From contig NC_134475.1 in the NCBI RefSeq assembly GCF_964194025.1, positions 48,856,001-48,920,000 of the forward strand: a stretch of 64,000 nucleotides of DNA, written 5' to 3'. The translations under genes and the position numbers were made by a program. Position 1 is the first letter of the stretch. Each line of letters begins with the position of its first letter. This DNA comes from Convolutriloba macropyga. Its lineage: Eukaryota. Positions 3,567 through 52,300 of the stretch are shown piece by piece. A model generated the notes under the pieces. The model was not told the DNA's origin. It worked only from the letters and a program-made list of their open reading frames with translations, and did not search any database.

Positions 3567-4186
3567 TGTTAGAATATCGACCAAACTATAGTCTTAAACT
3601 TAGTGAGAATTAGAAAGAAAGTTTAACTTACCAGAGTAGAAAGACAAAAGCAAATTGATTTTGATCAGAGAATTTTTATAAATGAATCGTCAAGAAATGG
3701 TGCTTAGAACCAATATTCATTTCAAATTGCTGAATCTAGATAACTAATATTAGAGTGAGATTATTTCATGTAAAATCTTCCAAGCATGTATTGAATGACT
3801 ATGATACCGCCGGAAATGTGAATGAATTCTTAGAAGTGTAAATGCATACCAACTATGGTACCCCCTGCGCGTGATTTCTGGGAAATTTGCAGAAGCAAAC
3901 CATATTGGGTAACTCTTGCGACTCCCATTGTAAATCAAGGTGCTAAGATTAGTTTTGTATCTTGACTTTCTCCCACTGATATTGGGTATGTATACAGCTG
4001 ATTTTTGAGCCGTTTTTTATCACCAAAATCAAATCACCATCTTGATCTAATAATCAGATCTCTCCTGTAAATCTCTAAATTCTACTGTAAAATATCATTC
4101 TTGTTATTCTCTCATTTCGCAAAATTAATTTTTCTACTTAGTTAAATACGCTTTTTATTCCGCTTGCGAAAACACATAACCCAACA
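3567..4186 (+). repeat. 5' LTR of copia element (620 bp)
   Basis: TGTTAGAAT...CCCAACA; aligns with 7940-8558 and 10499-11117. Confidence 0.95.
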
Positions 4187-4200
4187 AGTTATGGGCACAG
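4187..4200 (+). promoter_or_regulatory. Primer-binding site, half-tRNA-iMet type
   Basis: AGTTATGGGCACAG immediately after the 5' LTR; two mismatches from GGTTATGGGCCCAG, the Drosophila copia-type PBS complementary to the anticodon region of initiator tRNA-Met. Confidence 0.8.
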
Positions 4201-4318
4201 CAATTTTTTAAGTCATTAAACTGATTTCTAAAACAAAACTAATTTGTTGTTGACAGTCATAATCCTTTTCTACTTGGTGTCTTTTCTTTTCACAACTATT
4301 TTGCCTGCTCAAACTACG

Positions 4319-7300
4319 ATGGATCAAGAGACAGTGAAGGTGAAGCTACTGACCTACACAGGAAAGGCACAGGAATTCCAATCTGGAGCACAAGATTTGT
4401 GGCAATGATGCAGACGAAGGAACTCTAAAAATCACTACTTGGGACACAGGAGCAACCAAACAAGCCTGCACCACTAGACAATGGGGCGAGCAATGATGAA
4501 AAGAAAAACCACAAGGTGCTGAAAGATGCATATGAGAAGGAAGTTGCAGACATCAAGAAGAAACGGAACAATGTGTGGTGCCATCTGGCACTGACTCTAG
4601 ATGCAACAACCCTTATGCTGATGAGACATGACTGTGTGGGAGATGACGGCATCGGAGATGGGGCAAAGGCTTGGAAGCTTTGCAGGAGAGATTTCAGAGT
4701 GTGGAGACGCTGACAGTGATGACTTTGGAGGCACATCTTGCTCGACTGCAGCTCGAGGATGCCAAGGATTTGGATAGCTTCTTCATCAGAGGACAGGAGT
4801 TGCCCACATGGCTACAAGAAGCAGGGGAAGCAGTCTCAGAGACCCTCTTCAACGCCTTGGTCTTCAATGGTCTGCCAATGAGGTATGAAAGTTTTGTTAT
4901 ACAGGAAAGCTTTAACCCGGCAACGACCTTCACAGAGTTGAGGAAAAGGCTGCAGAACTTCCATGAGAACACAGCACAGAGGCACAAGGGACAAAGAGGT
5001 TCAGTGGCACTGGCAGTGAAGCGTGACTTCAAGAAGGGACCCATGAAAGGAAACTGCTTTGTGTGTGTGGGATCCCTGGACAATTTGCCAAGGACTTCAG
5101 GAGGAAGGAGACAGCACTATGCAGCAAGTCTGGTGAGAAAGGTCACCTAGACAAGGCATGCAAGAGACAAAGAGATGGAGGCAAACATGAGTCAGTGGCA
5201 ATGGGTCCAACATTGGCTTCACCAGACGAGGAATACTGGGCAGCTCTTACCCAGTGGAAGACCGCAGGCATGCTAGTGGACAGTGGTTGTACAGATCACA
5301 TAGTGACGAATATCGATGCGTTCCTGGACTTTGTGCCCGTTCAATCAGTGGTCAGAAATCCCAACGGAGAGGCTTCCAGAGTGATGGGCAGAGGCTGTGT
5401 GAGGATCAGCATAACCTCAAACAAAGGGGAATTCCAATGCGAACACAAAAATGTTTTGCGTGTGCCGGACTCTCAAATCTCTTCTTCAAACCTCTTATCA
5501 GTCTCAATATGCACGGAGTGGGGACATAGCTTCACTTTCGAGAAAGGCAATAGCTGCATGACACTCTAGAAGGAAACTCGGGTAAAACTAACACAAGAAA
5601 ACAATTTGTTTTACTTACCCTGCAGCGTTCTAGAATTCAAGATGAGTTCCAACAGCGTGAAACTTGACAGTGCAAGGAAGTGGCACAGACCATTGGGTCA
5701 TTTGAATCAAACGGATGTAGTCAGGAATGCACCAGAGACAGTGGGGGAACTCGATGATGTATGCAATGTGTGCGCATTGGCCAAGATCACAAATACTCCA
5801 GTACCAAGAATGGCAGAGACCCAAGCAGAAGAGAAGCTGGAGAGGGTGTTCACAGACGTGATGGGACCTTTCAGAGTAGAGTCACTGTCAGGGTTGCGGT
5901 TGTGCATTGTGTTTGGAGACCAGTACACGAAGTTTGTGCTTGTGGACTTGCTTAAGGCAAAGAGTGAAGCACTGGCCAGCCTGAAGAAGTTTGTTCTCAG
6001 TGTGCGGACGCCCAAGAAGCCGAAACAAGTCAAGACGATGGCAACAAAGAGGAGCAAGGCACATCTACTGCAATCAAGGAGGAGTGACATGACGCAGAGA
6101 GCGTGAACACTCCAGAAACGACACAGACGAGATGCCTCAGATGTTGAGGAAGCAGCACTGGATAAAGAATCTACCGCAACAAGAGGGAGTGACAGAGACT
6201 CGGAGTCACTGGAAGACAGTGAAACGGAGGACTTCTCACAGTCAGAGACAGTTGGCTTCTTTGAAGAGGCACTGGATCAAGCGGACAGATGAGAGACAGG
6301 AGCAAGGAATGTTCCGTAATTTTCTGTAGAAGTCAGGACCCATCTTGCTGTGACTAAGTATGACTATGTGGAACCCAAAACAGTCTATGAAGCCAAGCAT
6401 GGTGACGATTGGGACCAGTGGCACCGGCCAATGAAGGACGAGATCAGGGCTCTCCAAGACAACGAGACTCGGAACCTAGTGAGACCACCCACAGACAGGA
6501 ACGTCAAACCGGGAAAATGGGTCTACAAAGAGAAATTGGGACCCAGTGGTCAAGTGGACAACTACAAAGCACGCTATGTGGCGGAAGGCTTCAAACAGGT
6601 GGAAGGACTGGACTAATTTGAGACTTTTGAGCCTACCTGTAAGCCAGAGACATTCAGGATTCTACTTCAACTATCAGCGAAGCGGGGCCATGTGATGCAC
6701 CAGTTTGATGTCAAGGCGAGTTTCTTGCTCTCACCAATAGAGGAAGAAGTGTATCTGGAATAGCCACAGGATTTTGTAAAACAAGGATCACATGGAGAGA
6801 AGTTAATATGCTGACTTAATAAATGAATTTATGGTTTGAAACAGGCTGCTAACAACTGGTTTAAGGAACTGGCAAACTTCCTACTGAGACAGGGGTTCAC
6901 CAGAAGCAGGAATGACCATTGCCTGTTCGCAAGAGCAGAGACAGAGGGTCACACCTTCATATTGGTCTGGGTTGACGACACCATAGTGGCATCATGAAGC
7001 ATGACAGTGATCTCCGATGTCAAAAAAGCACTCAAAGCAACATTTCACATGGAAGACAGAGGGAGAATACACTGGTTTCTGGGTCTAAGAATCAGACAAG
7101 AAGAGGGCAAAGTCACAGTCGACCAAGAACGCTACATAGAAACAATGCTCGAGCGGTTTTCAAATGGAATAATGCAAACCCTCAAGAATTCCAGCTGATT
7201 TGAATTTGAAACTTCAGACAGCACAAAACGGAGACGAAGAAGCGGACCAGAGGATCTACAGAAGCTTGGTTGGATCACTTCTGTATCTGGCCAAACAGAC

Positions 7301-33200: not shown

Positions 33201-36200
33201 CTTTCATTTGTGTCAATTGACGTGATCAATTTCTTTCGCCTTATGTTCTTTCGCTCGCTTTACTGATTTGATTTTTCGTCAAAAGAATGGGATAAATAGG
33301 TGAAGGCATTAAGTGGAGCAGCTCTTTTGGAGCTTTGATAAGGAGCAGCCGAGGAACTCTTGGGGAGTCAAAATTTCATGGTATAAAGAGCGATTTTTAA
33401 AGGTTCATACCCCGCTTTTATTCTTACCAATTGAAGCTAGCCGCTTACACTCAAGCTAACTACAGACAGAACCTACACTCGCTGAGCTGATATTTTCAAT
33501 TTCTCGCGAATGAAATATGAAGCAATTATTGTAAACGTATCTTCTTGACGCAAAACTTTCGATGGACAGTTTTGATTTTTTTATAGAACAATCTACCGCT
33601 CGCTTGAGCAGTATAAGTTAACTTTCCGGTATCAAAAACATAAAAAAAACTGGTTAAGCCTGAGAGCATTAAATGCCTGAGCACCTTTCTTAGAGCTTTA
33701 GTAGTCTCTAATCAACGCTATTATAGGAGATCTGTATTCGCCGTGATCTGCGCTAATACATGCTGCGTGCTCTCAATTCAGCAATAAACCAATTAAGTTG
33801 GAAAATGATTAGAAATTCCATTATACCGTGCCATTTGTGTTGGCAGGTATTTGGTAACAGATGATTGGCTTAAATTTGCGGTAGACGATTCAACATTGTA
33901 CACACAGCAACAGCCAACTGATCCAAAACTATCTGGTCACGAAGGTAAATAATACTGCCAATTTTCTATTGATCAATGATTTATAGCCTTGCAAGGTAAG
34001 CACTGCTCGAGTTTTTTTTTTAGAACCTTGCAAGATCATCAGTCCTCGACCCACCATCATTAAAGGCTCAACAAAACGCTGAAATCGAAGATAATTCAAA
34101 GATTTGAATTCTCATTAATTGCTCTCAAATGAGGTTTATAGCAATTTTAGTTCTGCTGGTCTTTTTAAGCAAATTTTTCGTATGACCATTTGACTTTTCG
34201 ACATCTGAAACGGGATAAACAGGTGAGGCCTGGAGGACATTAAGTTTCTCTTAGAGCCTTACGGTTTACTAGTCTAAGTACGCGATTCACCGAAACTGTT
34301 TAAGAGACAACTCATGGCGTGAGGGTCGGTTCATAGAGTTGACAAAATTTCGATATAATCAGGACGGCATCAGAAAGGGCCCGCAGAAAGTGTTGTAAGT
34401 TAATGATAAACTTATAAGAATATTGAAGAAACTGTAAGATCAAAGTTTACCATCCGGTCTCGACTCGGATACGAAGCTTGAGCAATGTAGCCCTGTTAAA
34501 TGAGCAGCATTCATACAATAAACACTAATAAATTACACAAGAATTGGCGACCACGCAAGCTTTGCAAAGTTTATTCAATGGTGTGGTTATTCAAGGGCTT
34601 ATAGATCTGCGCAGACCTAATCAGGTGGGGATAAAATTTGTCATAGGTTTTCGGTCTCCCGTCTCATCGCCAGATTGGCAAAATTTTCGCTCGACCGTTT
34701 TTGCGCTTTCTGTTCTGGAAGATTCTTTGATTTCACTTCTGCATTGACTTGTTCAAGCTTGAATTGATTTTTGCGTGATATAAACTGCTATTATACATAA
34801 ATTAAGTTTGTTACCAAAACAAAAGCTATTACAAGGCTCTGATAGCCGAGTAGTTTATGCTTCAGTACAGCACGGCGGATGAAGGGGATTTCAACCCGTC
34901 CCAATTTAGAATTTTTGCACCCATAAAATTTTATCTTGTCTACAGCCTCCTTTGAGTTAAATTGCCCCACCTGGAAGTTTGTCCAATGTTAGTCGATTTA
35001 TGTTTCACCACATTTGTAACCAATCTGAACTCTGGATGTCCAATTTGCTCTCGAGAAAAAGAGCAATCGTGGTATAAATATGCTTCTATTTCTAAAGAAA
35101 TATTGGACCAAAAAAGAACAAGCAACATTGAATTCACCAATCTCCCATAACTATTTTCAATACATAAATAAATTCATCTTTTCTTTCTATTTACAAATTA
35201 GACGAAATATTCAAAGAGAAAATTCAGCTTTACAGGGGCTAGTTACTTCATGCAACTCTATAATTCCATTTTGCTGAAATTTTGCTTTTTTTATTAAGAA
35301 AATATATCGATAACAAATCGCATGATATTTTATACTTGATTAAACTCCGATCATTTGAAATCATGACAGACGTAAATAACTGCGATATTCGCAAAGTTCA
35401 GAAATTGTTACGAAATTCAGCTAGTTTGAACTTATTCCATAATCTATCAATTCAGAAAACAGCTGTCATTCGATGTAGTTAGTGACCCCATAACATATTG
35501 TGACCGTAATATTGGCTCCAGGACAAATATTAAGTAACTCAGGCAATAACTTGTAACCGGGAAGTATATCGTGAACGCAGTCCTCCAAACAATTTCAGAA
35601 CTAAATTCGAGAACACAAAATAATGCAGCTCCGGAATGAGCGTCCATTGGTAAACTAATAACCGACATAATTGGCATGCAATAAATGAGACTTCTTAGAA
35701 TAAATTGAAAGATTGAGGAGACGAATCAGAGTTAAATTTTCAAATGATGACAGAAATTTGCAGCAGAAGACTTTGTAAATGCTGCTCTTTTTGATAACGA
35801 AGACCGAATTTGGAGCTAAATAGAGAGAAAATTGATAATTTTTGCAGCTGATGACTGCAACATCTGTTCTTCTAACGCTAGAATGCCTTCTAACGGTTAA
35901 GCACTTGCAGAATAGTGAGAATGTAGAGGAATATATTGATAATGTCCAAGTAGAGGTTGATAGCCGCAAAGATGTACTCCTCAGGGCTGATCGTGTACCT
36001 GTGATTTCCCCCAATCATCATTTGGGTGTCTATCACCAGGTAGGCAGAGAACACCAGAGCTCCGAGGGATCCATAAACCGCAGTCAGAATGTCATTTGGG
36101 AAAATGATGGCGATTATGCCGAAAACAAGCAAGCAGATCAGTAGAACGAAAAGTAATCCGCTATAAACTGTGAAGTCGATTTTGGTTTGGAAGGCGAATA

Positions 36201-39200
36201 AAGTGAGTGATAGAGCAACCACAGCTGTGACTGTAATAGCCACCAGCACGATCTTCGTATCGTATTGGCTTGATATAACTCCCAGCAAGAAACTCTCGCA
36301 AATTGTGAACAGCCCAAGCAATATAAAATTTATGGGCGTTTTGCGTCGAAGGCTTTCAACGCAAACTAAAGCAATCAGTAACCCAAACGTTAGAATAATC
36401 GCAACAATAAGCATCCATGCTTGGTCCGCGACATAGTCTTTTACAGGTTCGCTGAATACGAACAGAGCTATAAACCCCAGAGTGATTAGTAATTGCACAG
36501 ACAAAATTGCGTATACTTTGCGAATAAATCCGTGACGAACGGAGGTTTCGTCAAAACTCCCAAAAGAGTTGTCGACCAGAGGCGTTTCACTGTCGTACAT
36601 GGCTGCTCTATTCTATATTACTCACTAATGCAGCATTAAATTAGAGAACGTCTATGTTGAGTTTTGACCATTCAGTAAAATCTGAAATAAAAATTTACTA
36701 GGACTAATAAAAAATTCGTCTCGGATGCAAATTAAAACTCGATATGGTAAAGTCGAGAGAAAATGAAGCAAATGCTTATTAAAAACAGTATAAACGACTA
36801 GTAAATAATGCGTTGTTTTATTGAACAGAGAAAGTTAGTTATTCAAGCCTGTTTGGAGAGCGAACTTAATTAAAACGCATTAGAATGACTTTCAAATTTT
36901 TATTAACCGTGCCACGCTTCTATTACAAACGAAAATTCTTTAAAACTAAGATTATGAAGCGCGTCATGTGTCTGTGAAAATATTTCCTGTATGGAGAAAA
37001 ACGTGAATGCCAGTAGGGTGCCGAAGGAGTAGACGCATTTAATAGTACTTGTGGAAGCTTTAGTGATATAAACCTGTGGTTCAAAACTCCCAATAATTGC
37101 TCTGCACAACATTAATTTATGGTCTCCTCGGCAGTTGCGGTTAATCACGTGCTCAGACAGAAATAAAGCCCGAACAGCACTACTCAGCAACTTAATGTTC
37201 TCAGGATTTCACAGTTTTTCTAGACAAAGCGGTAAAAAAAATTGTCACATAGAGGAAAAATCGCATTAAAATAGACCAGCAGGACTAAAATAATTGAGAG
37301 ATTGAGAGCAATTAAAAATCTTGAAAATTCAAAAAATGATCAAAACTATTGAAGAAATCATGATGGAAATAAATAAGAATGAACTTTTTGAAGTTGAAAA
37401 CGAACCTGAAAAGAGAGGCGACGGATAATTTTAGCCACGGGCAAAACGCTAAAATTTGAACAAACGATCACAATTCTTTGATCTCGAGTACGCTTTAGCA
37501 AACGCTTCAAAAATTATCAGTGATTATTAAAAAAAAACATTTTCCTTTGAAGGCAAAAAATATCCTATTTTAGCGCCAAAAAGAAAAAAAATCTTTTAAA
37601 TTATCATTTTGCAGATTTCTTGAACAAGAAAACACCTCTCACTACTTTAAACAAGGTTAAAACAGAGAGAGCTGAGACCGCAGAGCTTAGAACATTTGCA
37701 ACTTTAATAAATTATATGAAATTACTAGTCATCGGATAAATAGCAGAAACATTTTCGCCAACCCGAAAAGGCCCAATAGTACGATGGAACACGTTTATCA
37801 AAAAAGAAATCAGATCACAGTTAGAAAAATATTTCTTCACTGCTTTTCCATGAAAACGTTGTGTATTATATTATAGTTGCTAATATGAAGCCCATCTGTT
37901 AAATATTCCTCTATAATGTTGGATATTCATAATTAACAGGAGTCGAGGATATTGAGGAGGAGGAGGATGTGGATATGCCTGCCCCGATCAGAAGTGTGTT
38001 CCTCTCTAACCTGGTGTGGGACGACGACGGGGATGTTGGAAAGAGAGTGGACTGGCAACTGAGACAGTACCAGAAGATGGCGTACAAACCTAGAAACAGG
38101 TCCTAACAGACACACTTTAAATACCTATTCGGATATGAAATAACATGGCGGTTTACATGACAAAATATTCAAAAGTTTCCATTTTTTTCACAAACGCTGC
38201 TATGAATAGCTAGCAGCCAGTGGACTAAAATGGAATGACTGTACGCATGAGAGTCCGACTCCATTAATTATAATTAAAAGCACATTGACTCTCTATTTAA
38301 CCAGAACTGTGCCCATTTCCGGTACATAACACTCATGTCGATTAGGGAATCAATGTTCTTCAAAGTAAAAGTCAGCTGGAAAAAATGACTCTTTTGTATT
38401 AAAAGACTAACATTCACTAAATGCTTAAACGCTTGAACTGGCAACAGAACGCACGTTGAGAAAACCAGAAAATCACGCAGACATGTTTTCTTACAGATGG
38501 TCTCCTAAAATCACCATACCTCAGCCCTTCAATATGACCATAAGGGAGTACACTAGACCCAAGAGCGAAACATATGCTCAACAGCGGATGGAGAAAATCA
38601 AGGAAGCACAGTTAGTAATTCAGTTGAATACCAGCGCGCTGTTCACCACCTCCAAGCTTTAACATTTTAGAGATGCAGAGCTGAAAGTAAGAATTAGACC
38701 TACAGACGTACCGAAAAGCACAACTCTTCCAAAATTTCAACGCATCATGGAGGAAAAGCAAAAGCGCAGCGTTCAGGTAAAATCTAAAATAAACTCATGA
38801 GTAGACTCACGCATGGCATTAGCTTCGATTATTAATTTCTCTCAAACAAAGTTTGAGAGCAATTAACCCCATAACCATCACCACCACCGCGCTAACCACT
38901 CAATAAGCTCGAAGCCAACCGCTCGCCAGTCGTTTGCGAGCAATTTGCCCTACGCTAGTCGGTTATGTTCAATATAATTTGCAATGACTTTGCTATGCAT
39001 TTATGCTAACGTCTTCAGCAAAGTCATAATTCCAGCTAAAATTCAACTGTAATCTATTACAGCAAAATTTTCATATCATCACAAGAATTTCACAACAAAA
39101 AGCAGACTAACACATATATATGAACCATTTCATTCTCTAAATTTATCTTTGAACAACTCTAACCTATTGTTAACAATACTTCACCTTCACCAAAATAAAT

Positions 39201-44472: not shown

Positions 44473-44958
44473 TAAGAACGTGCTGACATATTCTAGCAGC
44501 TTCAATAAACCAATTTACTTTTATCATCAATTTTTCTTTTGTATAAGGTGACAAAACGATACACAATGAGTGTAAATTTCTTAATCAGTCCGCCCTAAAT
44601 TACACTCATTGCAAAGAGTGTAAAAAGAGTGCAGAAAACAGTGTAATCTTTTAAAAATTACACTCTTACATTGTTGTTGTTAATAGCAGCCCTCATCTTC
44701 TCAGCCGGCTATTATAGCGCTCCTATTTTTTTTTAATAGCCGCCCTCATCTTCTCAGCTTGCTATTATTGCGCTCCTATTTTTTTCTACTTCGAACTTTT
44801 TTCGCTTTACCATTTTGCCGCTTTTTCGACACTTTGCGTGAAATCTTTTTGACTTCTGTAGGCTAGTTTCTCTCTTCTCTCATTCTGCTAAAAGTGAATT
44901 TGAACATCAGTTGCTCAGCAAAGCAATTCAAAATGAACAGAGTCAATATAAAAAAATG

Positions 44959-45078
44959 GGGTCCTTCCCATTATAGCCCCCCATGAAATTATAGCCCCCC
45001 ATTATGGTATAATTACCATGTTTGGGGGGCTATAGGTTATCTGACCACTAAGCTGGGGGGCTATAATGGGAAAGACCC
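44959..45078. mobile_element. 120-bp MITE, GG-initiated TIRs, 8-bp TSD (Merlin-like)
   Basis: TIR GGGTC(C/T)TTCCCATTATAGCCCCCC; TSD AAAAA(A/T)TG; absent from other family-1 copies; relative at ~40818-40900. Confidence 0.75.
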
Positions 45079-45355
45079 AAAAATTGAAGTCAGAAATAGA
45101 AACGGGATAAACCCATAAAGCCCAATTTTAGATGCCCGCTATTTGAACGTCGTTCCTATAAGTCTTAGTTACCATCTCTTATGCTTATTGGTGTTGATAG
45201 TAGCCCCTGTAGCCTCTCTCTAAGAAACAGAAGTATGTTCAACTACGAAATGCCATCAAAATAAATACGACTTCAAAAACTTTTTTGTAAAAATATTTTT
45301 TTTCCAATATCTTCTATTCGTTCAATCCCAATCATGCTTATTGGAATCAACGGCG

Positions 45356-45543
45356 GGATCTTTTCCGTTTGTGCCCCCCCCCCCCCCCCCAGCTTAGTGG
45401 GCGCATATTATTTCCACCCCCCCCCCCCCCCCAGACGCACGTGCAATAATTTTACATAACGATTTACTACGTAATGACACGTGCTCTGTAACTGGGGGGC
45501 GCATAACGTACTGGCGGGGGGGGGGCACAAACGGAAAAGATCC
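45356..45543. mobile_element. 188-bp MITE, GG-initiated TIRs, 8-bp TSD (Merlin-like)
   Basis: TIR GGATCTTTTCCGTTTGTGCCCCCC; perfect TSD CAACGGCG (45348-45355, 45544-45551). Confidence 0.8.
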
Positions 45544-46509
45544 CAACGGCGGCTATTTTCCGGTAATCTGCCGGGTATGTTTGTGATTTTTTTACTTCGT
45601 CGAATACAAAAATGTTTCGCTTTACCTCATTTTGCCGCTTTTTCAACATTTTGCGCTAAATCTTTTCGACTTCTCTAGGCTAGTTTCTCTCTTCTCTCAT
45701 TCTGTTAAAAGTGATTTTCAACATCAGTTGCTCAGCAAAGCAATTCAAAATGAACAGAGTCAGTATAAAAAATTGAAGTCAGAAGTAGAAACGGGATAAA
45801 CCCATAAAGCCCAACTTTAGATGCCCGGTTTTTGAACTTCGTTCCTATAAGTCTTAGTTACCATCTCTATTGCTTATTGGTATTGATAGTAGCCTCTGTA
45901 GCCTCTCTCTAAGAAACAGAAGTACGTTATGTTCAACTACGAAATGCCATCAAAATAAATCGGATCTAAAAAATGTTTTTGTACAAAATTTTTTTTTTCA
46001 ATATCTATTCTTGCAATCCCAATCATGCTTATTGGATTCAACGGCGGCTATTTTCCGGCAATCTGCCGGGTATGTTTGTTGTTGCTGGGAATTTTCATGT
46101 TGTCCTGAGTGGATTTTTCCCTGTTGATGGATTAAAATCTTGACTACTGATCTCGGCACAGGTGGCAATCACATGCCAGCTGCTAAGAACACACGTTACA
46201 AAGTCTTTCCCTCGATCAATAGGAGTGGAATACGCGAATCCTGATCCCCTCTAGTTAAGGTTGGATTAAGGGTTAAACCCCGACCCGGTAACGCTAATTT
46301 TTTGACGTAGCATGGACAAAAGATTTCGTCTAGAAGAGAAGTTGATTTGTGGTCATGGAAAATTATTTTTTGAGTACGTTCGTTGATGGATTATCTTGCA
46401 CTTGGTAAAATCAGGATCGTATTGAATGCAGTTTTTTATCGCCTGATATATTTCCTGGGATAAAAGATATAAAGTTGCACATGGTATCACATGGCAATTG
46501 CACATGGCA

Positions 46510-47492
46510 TGTTTTGCAAATGGCATTTTTTGCACATGGTATCAAAAACCATCAGATACTGGAACAATTCTGAACTATCGTAGCTGTGCACCCCTACAAT
46601 ATAAGAAAAGCATAATAACGGAAACAATACACCGCCTATTCCGAGCCACCAGCAATTGGGAAGCGTTCCATGAAGCATTGACAAAAAAAAAGAAGAAATT
46701 TGGGAACGCAATCAATATCCTAGGGATTGGGTAGGGAATATATACGTACAACCGGAGGGGACAATTTTTTGCACATGGTATCAAAAACCATTAGATACTG
46801 GAACAATACTGAGCTATCGTAGCTGTGCGGCCCTTCAAAATAAGAAAGTCATAATACAGGGAAGAATACGCCGCCTGTTCCGAGCCACCAGCAATTGGGA
46901 AGCGTTCCAAGAAGCATTGAAAAAAAATGGAAGAAAATAAAGAAATTTGGGATCGTAATCAATATCTTAGGCAATGGGGAGGAAAAAATGTAAAGAATAC
47001 AATTAACCAGCTACGAAAGAAAGAACAAAGAAAAAGATATAACGCGGTTGTAGCCGTAAAACGACAAAAATAACTTAGAAACTACAATTTGTATTACAGT
47101 ACAGCGGCAACATCTCTAATGAATCAAAATTCATCTAGTTTCGAAAATTTTCACCACTCGGAAACTTATTAGCTGTTTACCTAGCTTCAAGTCTAGCTTT
47201 GATAAGGATCTCAAATCCCACGTGGTTTATGAATTCACTTGTAATGGATGCAAATCCATCTATGTGGGGCAGGCATGCCGACATATTACCACAAGGGTTG
47301 CAGGAATCACCGATGGGCGTACATGCAATCGAGTGCAACGGTGAAAAAACAGCTTTCCAGTGGAAGATATTAGACCAATGCAGCAACCAATCTAAGTTAC
47401 TGACACTAGAGGCGCTCTATATAAGAACAATGAAACCAGCCATCAACACGCGCGACGAACACCGAACACAAGAATTGACACTGAAAGCTTAA
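46510..47492 (+). mobile_element. Penelope-like element fragment (RT thumb + GIY-YIG endonuclease), with internal ~240-bp duplication
   Basis: WYQKPSDTGTILNYRSCAPLQYKKSI...IHRLFRATSNW (present twice) and C-terminal FQWKILDQCSNQSKLLTLEALYIRTMKPAINTRDE. Confidence 0.85.
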
Positions 47493-47869
47493 TTTGGAGA
47501 TAAAAATCCAACTTGAAAGACACGTTAAGAAACAAAAATTTCAACTTTACAATTGAACAAAACCAAAGTAAGTTTAAAGCAATATATGTAGGTTTTTTAA
47601 TAAAAAACATGTCGATATGCATCTGCTACATCAATTCGAAAATGTATTTTCACTCAGATGTAAATGTTTTGTAGATACGTTTGTAGATATGAAATATGGA
47701 TTGTTGAGATATGGATGGATGGTCGTCAATTTGCTCTTGCTGAAATATGGATTGTATTGAATGCAGTTTTTTATCGCCTGATATATTTTCTGGGATGAAA
47801 TATAGAAAGTTGATCATTTTCTGTTTAATAGCTATATAAAATAAAAAGACTATATAAAAATTCTAAATT

Positions 47870-47907
47870 ACTCGAACGTTTTCGCAATAAATTGCATCGT
47901 CAGGAGT
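47870..47907 (-). ncRNA. Minimal type I hammerhead ribozyme
   Basis: Minus strand: ACUC CUGACGA U GCAA-UUUA-UUGC GAAA ACGU UC GAGU. Intact core, helix I ACUC/GAGU, palindromic AACGUU helix III. Confidence 0.8.
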
Positions 47908-48490
47908 TTAAAACTTGTTAATTAAAAATTTACAAATATGCATATATACAGCAGCGTGTCATGATTATCTGTTTGCTTTTCCTAATTTTTCTGAAATTCC
48001 AACAGGTTTCAAACTGAAATTTAATAAAATAGAGCAATATATGTAGGTTTTTTAATAAAAAACATGTCGATATGCATCTGCTACATCAAGTCAAAATTGT
48101 ATTTTAACTCAGATGTAAATGTTTTGTAGATACGATTGTAGATATGAAAAACTTCGTTTTAAATTTCCTTGAATGATTGATTTCGGTGATTTGCATTTTA
48201 ATTTCTGGCTTTCCATTTTAGCATTTTGTATTGTTTATAACCTGACGATTAACTCAGTGTTCAAAAACGTTCGTATGAAAGTTTTAAATTGACAATCTTT
48301 TTTTAAATCATATATAAAGTTGATCATTTTCTGTTCATTATGATTTGAAATATGGTTCAATAAGATTTGTTTGACTGATTTGAAACATTTTTTGTTTGAA
48401 GTATATTTAACCGTATGGTTATAATTTTAATTTACTTATTGCAAAATAATAGCTATAAAGAGTAAAAAGACTATATAAAAATGTTAAATT

Positions 48491-48528
48491 ACTCGAACAT
48501 TTTCGCAATAAATTGCGTCGTCAGGAGT
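48491..48528 (-). ncRNA. Minimal type I hammerhead ribozyme (second copy)
   Basis: Minus strand: ACUC CUGACGA C GCAA-UUUA-UUGC GAAA AUGU UC GAGU; 621 nt from the first copy, inside a direct repeat. Confidence 0.78.
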
Positions 48529-48794
48529 TTAAAACTTGTTAATTAAAAATTTACAAATATGCATATATACAGCAGCGTGTCTTGATTATCTATTTCCTTT
48601 TCCTAATTTTTTCAAAATTCCAACAGGTTTCAACCTGAAAGTTTAATAAAATGTTTATAAAACTCTTAAAACTTTTAACTTGACACTTTTTCTGTATGAG
48701 TTTTGATTTTTAGATTTTCGTTTTGATTAGCAATATAACGTTGCTCACATGGCAATTCGAATTTTTTTTTGGCAGAACAAGCTTTGTGCACATA

Positions 48795-49140
48795 ATATTT
48801 CAGTGTTAGTTCCCTGCTTCTGTATTCAACCCACGTATTCAGTTGTGGCTTGCGTCTACTAATGTGTAGAGCTTCTGTGGTCAAATTTTTTGGTATCTTG
48901 GCACTGATCAATCACCTTAATTAAGGGCTGCTGGAGCCCCACCGCGATCAACAATATGTTGTCCCACCGGTGAATCGGTCTTTTGATGCTCAGAAGCTCT
49001 CGTGGCCAAATGTGGACATGTTTGCCCGACATAGGTGCATCCACAATACTTGAGTTCGTAGAGCACATGAGACTTCAGATTGCTATCAAAACTAGGTTTC
49101 ATGGACGCTGGGCATGTACATAATGTTCCCGTAGTGAAAT
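48795..49140 (-). mobile_element. Penelope-like element GIY-YIG fragment
   Basis: SHVLYELKYCGCTYVGQTCPHLATRASEHQKTDSPVGQH and EALHISRRKPQLNT. Confidence 0.85.
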
Positions 49141-49364
49141 CGGTTGTTAATTCGCACGTCCCGAAAATCGCTGTGACAATTTTTTTAATCTTAGCGCCGT
49201 GACGATTTGCAATTTGAGTGGAAGAACATTTTTTTGAGACCCCAGTTCAGGTGCTTTTCTAGAGAAGTTATCATAGTTTTCAAATGTTTTGAAAAAAAAG
49301 AGCGCAATAATTGCGATATGACAAAACAATTGAATGAAGTAAAGTTTCTAAACTTGATGAATTT

Positions 49365-52300
49365 CTAAGCTTGAGGGAATTGGGTTCCAATTGAGTCTAT
49401 GGTTTTTAACGCCTGAGTCATCTTCTTTATCGTTTGTTTAACAAGACTCGTGAAACTGAGACTGCTATCAATTGTTAGTCCTAAATTTTTACACTCATTA
49501 GAATTTTTGGTTAGTTTGTTATCTAACAATATTGTGTCCTGGGTTTCGTTTCTTTGATCATTTGGTTTGCTAAAACGAACGAACTCTGGTTTCGAAGCAT
49601 TCAAATTTAATTGATGTTTTCTGAAATAATTTGCTAAATAATGTATGTTTAATTCCAGGGACTCTTTTGCTATCTTTTCATCCTTTTTTAGAAGCAAACA
49701 ATAGGCAACCATCAGCATACTGTATCATTGTTACAGAAGTATCAATAGCTGTACAAAGATCGTTTCATATAAATTGAACAAGAGAAGTCATAAACCAGTT
49801 TCCTTGGGGTACACGTCTGAAAACCTTTATCCAGTTGAAGTAAACAGATTCTAACTTTACACGTTGAAGACTGGCAGAAGAAAGCTCTTTATAGGGTTCT
49901 CTGCGTCGCTATCAGAGCCAATTTTTTAGATTTTTATTAAAATATCTTTGGATATGGAACCAAATGTTTTAGAGAGATCCAAAAGTGCAGCATGGACAAT
50001 TTAGTTTGAGTCAATACTTTTCCACACTGATTCTATGAAACATAAAAAGGCACAGGCAATAGAAACACGTTTTTGAAAACCAAATTGAAGCGGATCCTTA
50101 AGTTCAGATTTTTGTACGCGATTCGTTGATTTTTGGTGTAGGATATGCTCAAAAATTTTTGAAAGTGCGCTTGTGGTTGATATTGGACGGTAGTTGGTTG
50201 CATCCATCCGTTCACGTTTTTTGTAGACGGGGATGAATTATGCTTTTTTAGTGCAGTCTGGGAAAATATTTTGTTAATTGCATTCCCTAAGAATGTAAGT
50301 AGGATGTGTACAATTACTGTTTGACCGTCTTTTCCAGCTCAGGCAGGAACCGTAAAAGGAACTATTTGCTTGTTGGGACTCAACTCCCTGACAACATCAT
50401 GAACTATTGTTTCTGTAACAAAAAGAAAACTGAGTGGTCTAGCATCTTTGCTTAACTTATTGTCGTGGGTGTATCGTTTTACATTCTTGTCCCTAAAAAG
50501 TTACCAAGGTTAAAAATAGTTTAGTTTAGAAAGTCCGCTATTTCAAATTTGTTAGTTAGTAATCTTTAAACTAATCAAATTTTGCAACTCAGTTAATGTA
50601 GTGAAATTATTTTCTTTCTCTCCAATTGAATTAAATAAATTCCAGAGTTTCTTCTCAATTTCCAGAAATTCAAAACAATGTCATGAATAATCTGTCAGCA
50701 AGTTCAAGTGTTTGCAATGTCAAATTAATTTTTTTGTAAATGAAGTGCTAAGTTTCGAGTGCAATGCCATCAATTGATATCAATATATTAAACATTACGA
50801 AATCATCCTTGCATTGATAAATGAAATGCCACGGCCAAAATGACAAGGTTTTAACGAAATCATATGCATTGTACTAATTCTTGTCGAAACAGTACACACT
50901 TTTCTCATTGCATTTCATGAATTTGATATCGGTTACAATAAGAGATGCCAAATGATCTGATTTGAATGGCGTATCAAAACTATAATGCTTTTTTTCTTCT
51001 ATACTTTTGGTCAAAATGTAATCAAAAAGTATTTTTGAATTTTGTGCTAGTCTTGTGGTTTCATGAACGTCAACAATTTGTAAATCATATGGTGATATGA
51101 TGCTTTCCAGTTTTTTGTCACTTTCAATTAAACAATTGAGGTTGAAGTGACCCAGTACATGTAAAGTAATGCATTGTCCAAAAGCGTAGTCTAAATTGCA
51201 TGACAATTTGCCTAAAAAATTTTCTTGCTGTTGTTTCCTGGGATTGTACGTTAGCTTGATAATAATTTTCCTGAATTTTTTCGAAAAACTTTTTTTACAT
51301 TCAACCTAAACTGACTCATACACATTTTCGTCAAACATCATTAAATCAGGTTGTTTTGATGCGAGTCTATATTGGAACATATAGGGCTACACCTCCACGT
51401 TCCAAATCTTAGAGCAAACATTTGCAATTAAACAAGTTCCACTAATATCAATAATTTTGTTTTTCCCAAAATCCAGGAGGAGACAATATAATGAGATTGT
51501 TTTTCTAAAAACACTTTGCGCATTCAAGTCGAAAATTTTAATGTTTCTATAAAGTTTTTTGTTATCGCTAAAATAGATTCATAAGAAACTTTTGGTCATG
51601 ATTTTGACTCCACGCCACCACATACCAAAAAAGAATTCCAACAATTTTTGCCTGAGTCAACTTGGGTTGATTCCCGATAACCCTTGACACTACACGCACA
51701 AATAATTATATTTTTTGCACTGCAGTTATGGTAATATACAAAAGTATCAAGCATGCTGCTCAGAAAAAAAAAACTTTCTCCAAAAGGTACGTTATTAGAA
51801 ATGTAATTTTTAGGAAAATGAAATACGTCCCTTTGGCTTGGGCCTGGTGTTTGTCGACTCTGTTTCGGTAGAATTGATATAGCACAGTCGCCGTTTTCAG
51901 TGGGATGGAGGCCATCTGTGTGAACATAGTCAAGATTGTTTTGAAAATTGGCATTCAAGTCAATCAAACTAAGCTTTGTGTGCTATAGGTCCCCCACTTT
52001 TGAAACTAAGCTTCTTAGTTGCTTGTTGAATTTATTGACACTAACATTTCCCTTTTTTCCACAGGCTCCAAGCGGTATTAGAGTGCAGATTGATGAAATC
52101 TCTGGTATGAATTTGTAAGCGAATGTATTTATAAGCTTTTTGTATGCCGTAATTGATTCTTTAATGTCGAATGCAACTTTTTGACAATCATTGATTCCAA
52201 TTAGAATTGTAACTTCTTTCCCTTTTTTGCTCTGGTGTTTGCAGCTCTCTCCAGTTCTCCTGAGATCTTATGACCCCCAAAGCCGCTTGCTAACACATTT

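Follow-up and report, generated by a model that had tools for sequence, protein, structure and literature searches.

Two short motifs on the minus strand of the 64,000-nt stretch of DNA analyzed here (C8:48856001-48920000, hereafter the window) resemble minimal hammerhead ribozymes and lie 621 nt apart, raising the question of whether they constitute a working two-ribozyme unit or were brought together by some other route. A sequence-only reading of the window had proposed the former, with the pair forming a dimeric ribozyme that could excise a retrozyme-like RNA of about 620 nt. The features of the locus are listed below in order of position. The names family A and family D are labels coined in this analysis for two families of Penelope-like elements (PLEs), and units 1 and 2 denote the segments 47575-48029 and 48030-48650.

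46498-47694, plus strand: convergent PLE remnant, with RT thumb, GIY-YIG C-terminus and the start of the 3′ UTR (colinear with L020)
47695-47825, no strand assigned: middle specific to unit 1, in place of the family D hammerhead region (repeat D6, alignment A1)
47826-48029, minus strand: repeat copy D1a, a 204-nt 3′ terminal piece of family A with hammerhead copy 1 (direct repeat)
47870-47907, minus strand: hammerhead copy 1, with full core, bulged U, helix III AACGUU and C17 at 47874
48030-48309, plus strand: 280-nt 3′ end of family D, an antisense passenger between the hammerheads (genome copies)
48234-48280, plus strand: family D hammerhead that should be dead, 50.6 bits with model R1, with G10.1 changed to U and G12 to A
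48310-48446, no strand assigned: 137-nt spacer between convergent PLE 3′ ends in unit 2 (repeat D12, unit-to-unit alignment)
48447-49159, minus strand: 5′-truncated family A fragment, with GIY-YIG remnants, 3′ UTR and repeat copy D1b (genome-copy alignments)
48491-48528, minus strand: hammerhead copy 2, as copy 1 but with bulged C and helix III AAUGUU, and with C17 at 48495

Reading of the minus strand across 47700-48750 places the two motifs at 47907-47870 (copy 1) and 48528-48491 (copy 2). These spans consist of the matches to a degenerate motif pattern (47906-47871 and 48527-48492), which are the only two in the 64-kb window against 0 expected in 100 shuffles, together with a fourth base pair of helix I. 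Both motifs carry an open-ended helix I of 4 bp (ACUC/GAGU), a first core box CUGACGA followed by a single additional pyrimidine (a U in copy 1 and a C in copy 2), and a 4-bp helix II (GCAA/UUGC) that is closed by a G10.1-C11.1 pair and capped by the loop UUUA. A GAAA box follows helix II, and the helix III segment then leads to C17, which occupies the predicted cleavage position in each copy. Inspection of the core nucleotides (C3, U4, G5, A6, N7, G8 and A9; G12, A13 and A14; the A15.1-U16.1 pair; and an H17 that is not G) found all of them in place in both copies. The predicted scissile bonds fall 3′ of 47874 and 3′ of 48495, a distance of exactly 621 nt.

The traits that are specific to PLE hammerheads are likewise present in both motifs, namely a nucleotide lying between position 9 and position 10.1, the pair G10.1-C11.1, and a palindromic segment formed by 15.2-16.2 and loop 3. 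In copy 1 this segment (AACGUU) is a perfect palindrome. Its counterpart in copy 2 (AAUGUU) differs by a CpG-to-TpG change and self-pairs through G-U, such that the C-to-U change remarked upon in the sequence-only reading does retain helix III pairing in a dimer. The two copies differ at only one other position, the bulge, and both differences are located where variation is tolerated. The anatomy that had been reported for two 38-nt minus-strand motifs, with full core, 4-bp helices I and II, extra pyrimidine and palindromic helix III, was recovered position for position. Its agreement with the PLE-specific traits and with the PLE 3′ UTR setting described below upholds the assignment to the minimal type I PLE class, and both motifs are, by these features, genuine minimal type I hammerhead motifs of PLEs.

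The same architecture is widespread in the genome. A pattern constrained just at the core, at the extra nucleotide, at the closing G...C pair and at the helix III segment yielded 975 exact matches in the 1.18 Gb searched, compared with 1 for a reversed-pattern control. Several sequence families are represented among these matches, with differing helices I and II that nonetheless remain paired, helix II being represented by GAAC/GUUC, GCAA/UUGC and GCUA/UAGC, and helix I by AAC/GUU, AAAC/GUUU, UAC/GUA and ACUC/GAGU. In an alignment of 32 genome copies from about five families, none of them from the window, standard pairs occupy 88% of cells, a level reached by 0 of 500 column shuffles (69%) and not approached by controls in which the pairing was slid (23-45%). 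Seven of the nine helix pairs exhibit changes on both sides, although only about five families contribute independent events. Chimeric versions of helix II, in which GCAA would be combined with GUUC or GAAC with UUGC, occur 0 and 0 times genome-wide. Helices I and II thus appear to be backed by compensatory change, with few independent families contributing, and the covariation among genomic copies on which the earlier proposal had been staked is seen.

We also built a covariance model (R1) solely from other hammerhead families of the same genome and ran it over the whole window. All 9 pairs are standard in copy 1, which scores 32.2 bits (E about 1e-6); copy 2, likewise with all pairs standard, scores 23.1 bits (E about 6e-4). 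The Rfam search that had been put forward as a further check did not bear out the motifs, as the Rfam hammerhead families gave no match over the whole window at the gathering score and none over 47400-49000 at E<=10. We take this miss as a limit of the Rfam models, whose longer helices and loops the minimal motifs lack, and not as counter-evidence. Elsewhere in the window, a decayed hammerhead remnant resides at 2597-2638 on the plus strand (16.4 bits, E 0.06), with its first core box deleted.

To which element do the motifs belong? Each is contained in one copy of a 204-nt direct repeat, D1a at 47826-48029 and D1b at 48447-48650, the latter lying within the family A fragment. The two copies are 91-93% identical and offset by the same 621 nt, in accord with the direct repeat that the sequence-only reading had described. 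A first look at the genome gave at least 272 candidates for the repeat, of which the best 40 were scored and are 79-86% identical; copy counts given here are lower bounds, because the best candidates alone were scored. On BLAST of the window, 28 other loci show continuous homology that runs from 49159 through the hammerhead to about 48447-48456 and then stops, and when the same loci are aligned against D1a the homology ends at 47821-47857. Aligned lengths at these loci range from 170 to 720 nt, and all of them end within about 20 nt of 48447, which puts the hammerhead about 45 nt before the shared 3′ end of family A copies. This combination of a varying 5′ extent and a common 3′ end is the pattern of 5′-truncated retroelement copies, and family A is an old, mostly 5′-truncated PLE family.

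The coding remnants upstream of the tail are consistent with this identity. An uninterrupted 868-aa PLE ORF elsewhere in the genome, whose Pfam GIY-YIG match spans residues 774-851, aligns over residues 763-820 with the minus-strand piece 49102-48917 and over residues 835-868 with the minus-strand piece 48911-48675. The earlier description of the motifs as lying 3′ of a GIY-YIG fragment therefore holds for 49102-48675, and the family A hammerhead is located in the 3′ UTR, roughly 265 nt past the GIY-YIG stop. Pfam searches of the short ORF pieces in the window returned no GIY-YIG and no RT match, the homology having come from alignment to the uninterrupted relatives, and the family A fragment at the locus is without an RT. 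Across copies of the 204-nt tail, the mean majority frequency is 0.95 in the motif region versus 0.87 in the flanks, but because the 60 nt upstream are equally conserved, the higher conservation of the motif region is not specific to selection on the ribozyme. The genome-copy alignments made for this analysis were of the 47-nt motif and of the 230-nt non-coding tail. Directly upstream of the family A fragment, which ends against them at 49159, are LINE-like remnants on the minus strand (49365-51206) that give sub-cut-off Pfam matches to RVT_1 (50001-50207, E 0.053) and to an endonuclease-reverse transcriptase domain (50874-51206, E 0.064).

Uninterrupted relatives with ORFs of 868 and 885 aa contain RVT_1, PHD and GIY-YIG domains, with RVT_1 and GIY-YIG exceeding the Pfam cut-offs, whereas the PLE pieces in the window are fragments only and align to the thumb and GIY-YIG parts of these relatives. 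The copy with the 885-aa ORF (L076) carries hammerheads at 586-632 and 4315-4361, on either side of the ORF and 3729 nt apart, beside flanking direct repeats of 300 nt (271-570 and 4000-4299) that are 100% identical and have the same spacing of 3729 nt. This arrangement is the canonical PLE layout, in which pseudo-LTR repeats with hammerheads flank the ORF, and the identity of the repeats suggests that some PLE families in the genome moved recently. As a separate observation, the RT of these ORFs contains an inserted PHD finger (Pfam PHD E 5e-6 to 1e-4), located between the RVT_1 match and the YVDD motif; the instances are L075:1084-3690 (residues 498-546), L076:1370-4027 (residues 513-561) and L033:3309-3644. 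In the literature searched, PLE insertions of this type are described from algal Chlamys elements only and not from animal C-terminal-EN PLEs (PMC8557442).

The DNA between the two family A tails has a different source. Adjoining D1a is the 280-nt 3′ end of family D in antisense orientation (48030-48309), a segment with 1166 first-look candidates in the genome, the best of which reach 90-93% identity and match positions 1-280 of the query only. Judged by its copies, family D is a different PLE family, younger and more abundant than family A. A third hammerhead, absent from the features that the sequence-only reading had recorded, is embedded in this segment at 48234-48280, between the reported pair and on the opposite strand. 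In its alignment to R1, this motif has a non-standard pair and has lost G12, the general base of the hammerhead, and it should be dead because of that loss.

On the other side of D1a lies the plus-strand remnant, in which 46498-46734 (RT thumb) aligns to residues 616-673 and 47199-47492 (GIY-YIG C-terminus) to residues 806-867 of the same 868-aa ORF that is matched by the minus-strand pieces. This common target supports the earlier placement of the motif pair between two convergent PLE fragments. The start of the plus-strand 3′ UTR (47575-47694) is a duplicate of 48030-48149 (repeat D5, 120 nt, 95% identical). From the spacer that follows family D, a 31-nt piece (48310-48340) recurs beside D1a at 47800-47830 (repeat D12, 90%), and the other roughly 110 nt of 48310-48446 are absent from unit 1. 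Part of the middle that is specific to unit 1 (47695-47825) resembles 46396-46482 (86%, repeat D6). The interval 48030-48446 as a whole was found at no other genome locus among the best candidates scored, and alignments to genome copies identified no family A sequence between the two tails. Farther out, 44800-46157 is a very high-copy repeat, with a summed contig depth of 1e5-1e6 compared with roughly 3-25 for single contigs on unique DNA. Inside it, direct repeats of 150-160 nt recur at intervals of about 690-820 nt, and 45355-45386 and 45513-45544 form a 32-nt inverted repeat that has C/G runs.

Several observations bear on how two family A tails came to lie side by side. The mutual identity of D1a and D1b (91-93%) is set against the 79-86% that either shows to the other scored copies (the best 40 of at least 272), and of the genome's 30 exact family A motifs, those of D1a and D1b are alone in having the loop UUUA, with GUUA in the others. 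Moreover, the duplicated DNA reaches beyond family A, since both D5 and D12 lie outside the element. When unit 1 (47575-48029, 455 nt) is aligned with unit 2 (48030-48650, 621 nt), the two are homologous at both ends and along the 31-nt flank, with a gap of about 110 nt and a middle that is non-homologous. Because the two copies share private changes as well as flanking DNA foreign to the element, we attribute the pair to a local duplication of DNA, and we consider it probable that the hammerheads are passengers in duplicated PLE debris and not a working two-ribozyme unit. According to this model, a 5′-truncated family A copy would have inserted tail-to-tail beside a family D copy, and a segment of roughly 620 bp that covers both 3′ ends would then have been tandemly duplicated as DNA. 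Indels would have followed, and the middle of one unit would have been replaced, leaving a pair of family A tails, each with its hammerhead intact, at a distance of 621 nt. As the middles of the two units differ, the history is more complex than a single clean tandem duplication.

A pair of PLE tails could also be produced by integration itself. Partial tandems, as well as complex tandem or inverted arrays, are typical outcomes of PLE insertion (PMC8557442, PMC11167929), and the intact relative noted above has hammerheads in both of its flanking repeats. The two tails might accordingly represent a pseudo-LTR-type partial tandem from one PLE integration, with the interval filled by later insertions. 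We regard this origin as unlikely, because a pseudo-LTR made by integration would exclude foreign DNA, whereas the duplication here includes 120 nt of family D 3′ UTR at 95% identity and a 31-nt flank at 90%, and the interval between the tails is devoid of family A sequence.

Hammerhead arrays on a larger scale are also present in this genome. At C1:9144825-9161584 (L077, L078), the covariance model and BLAST reveal a minus-strand array of roughly 17 kb with at least 15 high-scoring minimal hammerheads, spaced first at 1457 nt and then at 537 nt, in units that are up to 99% identical. The whole 537-nt unit is confined to that locus, and only the hammerhead-bearing PLE ends of roughly 200 nt are dispersed. 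Tandem Repeats Finder, with its period limit of 500, reported nothing for this array.

Could the pair derived by local duplication nevertheless act as the sequence-only reading envisaged? A minus-strand transcript might form a dimer through an extended helix III, be cut after both C17 nucleotides, and release a 621-nt RNA that is perhaps circularized, as in a retrozyme. Both cores are intact, and a heterodimer could form a helix III of 6 bp with one G-U pair. In addition, tandem minimal hammerheads are known to require dimers (PMC4209133, PMC7229834), and animal retrozymes have been proposed to derive from PLE pseudo-LTRs (bioRxiv 10.64898/2026.07.22.740005). We nonetheless consider a retrozyme-like unit quite unlikely on the genomic evidence. 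The 621-nt unit does not occur elsewhere in the genome among the best candidates scored, and there is no sign that it has been mobile, as the other copies of the repeat end about 45 nt past the hammerhead and none enters the interval. The body of the unit is an antisense fragment of another PLE, with its own dead hammerhead and a spacer, and is found as a whole at this locus only; the private changes and the flanking non-element DNA shared by its two hammerhead copies are those of a local DNA duplication. In place of a dispersed, multi-copy unit, we find only its two tails, the one of 204 nt and that of family D with 280 nt, recurring separately. The hammerheads are without the loop 1 of retrozyme ribozymes and have a helix I of 4 bp, and the units measure 621 and 455 nt.

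Folding calculations point in the same direction. By nearest-neighbor energies, which ignore tertiary contacts, the double hammerhead reaches −11.3 kcal/mol versus −23.8 for the best dimer, and enforcing the double hammerhead in a 721-nt transcript costs about 25 kcal/mol in the same model. Thermodynamic folding of monomer, dimer and 721-nt transcript thus disfavors the active fold, which is weak evidence given that tertiary-stabilized cores lie outside the model. Minimal hammerheads of PLEs have also been found to cleave poorly in vitro, and no RNA-seq ends were seen at the cleavage site (PMC4209133, PMC11167929). In four runs, contigs that resemble whole-genome DNA cover 44800-50600 at an even, low depth on the unique parts and a very high depth on the repeats, with no starts, ends or joints at the hammerheads.

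The pair had also been called antisense to FAM161. This claim stands in part, inasmuch as one FAM161-like exon is present on the plus strand at 38498-38764, where tblastn aligns 89 aa with the genome's PF10595 protein at 35% identity (E 2e-9). A Pfam search places the only full-length FAM161-family match in the genome on another chromosome, as an intronless 625-aa frame at C7:35390483-35391598. Other coding sequences in the window include an uninterrupted 236-aa ORF on the minus strand (35890-36600) with a full Bax1-I (TMBIM-type) domain (E 5e-45), and LTR-retrotransposon remnants on the plus strand (5063-6106) with a Pol beta-barrel domain and a GAG-pre-integrase domain.

Cleavage, dimer action and a circular RNA at this locus are possibilities predicted from the anatomy of the motifs, and nothing at the locus, where the fragment is without an RT and no promoter was found, indicates present function. 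A more speculative idea, which we judge to be very improbable, is that the duplication created a new two-hammerhead cassette by accident. If the minus strand were transcribed, possibly antisense to a host gene, such a cassette could, through cutting by a double hammerhead, yield a chimeric RNA of 621 nt as a possible substrate for circularization by a tRNA ligase. It would then represent a retrozyme caught at birth, not a member of an established family, and RNA ends at the predicted sites, if they existed, would mark the locus as a retrozyme-like unit originating from PLE debris. Least credible of all is the notion that AT-rich DNA has produced both motifs by chance as hits of a loose hammerhead descriptor, which the low information content of minimal motifs and the silence of the Rfam models even at E<=10 might encourage, but which we reject as next to impossible given the 975 genome matches against 1 control, the covariation in helices I and II, the unvarying place of the motif in the 3′ UTR of elements with RT plus GIY-YIG, and the E values of about 1e-6 and 6e-4 obtained with a model from other families.

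The retention of both motifs fits neutral decay. As a rough estimate, decay at about 9% per copy over 22 fixed positions predicts a proportion of roughly 0.1, and the observed figure, about 30 exact family A motifs in at least 272 candidate tails, is near it. Intact catalytic nucleotides, with differences only at tolerated positions, are also expected under selection, but two changes are a weak signal, and we draw no argument for selection from the differences between the copies because two are too few.

Minimal hammerheads were defined in the repeats of metazoan PLEs by Cervera and De la Pena in 2014 (PMC4209133), who described many covarying hammerhead families per genome, mostly as single motifs in truncated PLEs, with occasional pairs on opposite strands and 100-700 bp apart, as well as low activity in vitro and a need for dimers. 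The motifs examined here resemble those ribozymes in their type I topology, in which loop 1 is missing, a short helix I (3-4 bp), the unpaired nucleotide between A9 and G10.1, the conserved G10.1-C11.1 pair, a palindromic helix III of 1-2 bp that implies dimer action, and their location in repeats and in the 3′ region of RT plus GIY-YIG elements. The sole distinction lies in helix II, which is 4 bp here and 7-8 bp in the Schistosoma families.

The manner in which the family A copies end also has precedents. Truncation at the 5′ end, complex tandem or inverted insertions, and hammerheads near 3′ ends have been reported for PLEs by Craig et al. (PMC8557442). In the Poseidon PLE PAc of Anolis carolinensis, as at this locus, the hammerhead is situated in a repeated UTR of a tandemly organized PLE, and copies end a few tens of nucleotides from the ribozyme, which in PAc is linked to internal initiation of reverse transcription, the explanation given for its short "tail" (PMC11167929). 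Unlike the hammerheads described here, that of PAc overlaps the start of the ORF. Its cleavage required the element's protein, was dispensable for insertion in vitro and left no RNA-seq ends at the cleavage site (PMC11167929). In the parent element of family A, the hammerhead may, going by the literature, have helped to process tandem PLE transcripts as a dimer, probably with the assistance of the element's own protein.

Animal non-LTR retrozymes (PMC7229834; bioRxiv 10.64898/2026.07.22.740005) are also composed of AT-rich non-coding direct repeats, each with a type I hammerhead. They share with this locus an evolutionary tie to PLE pseudo-LTRs and the capacity, in principle, for double cleavage to yield a unit-length RNA. 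Retrozymes form multi-copy families with units of about 170-400 nt, often in long arrays, whereas here there are two units at a single locus; and their hammerheads are canonical, with loop-loop contacts, and their circular RNAs have been demonstrated, whereas the present motifs are of the minimal type, in a chimera of two PLE tails that is known from DNA alone. The helix III of these motifs would be unstable until two of them pair, as in the double hammerheads for which PMC4209133 cites Forster et al. (1988), and in salamander retrozymes (PMC7229834). In those systems the partners lie next to each other as units of a single replicating or satellite RNA, whereas here they would be separated by 621 nt in a putative chimeric transcript.

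All features described here fit the published picture of PLE hammerheads, to which they add another family and another host. Because duplication of transposon tails as DNA can yield such pairs, hammerhead spacing alone is no evidence for a retrozyme or a circular RNA, and the locus serves as a caution that intact-looking hammerhead pairs and arrays in this genome can come from plain duplication of this kind. It is one more instance of the minimal PLE hammerhead, a type described in 2014, of which this genome holds about a thousand.
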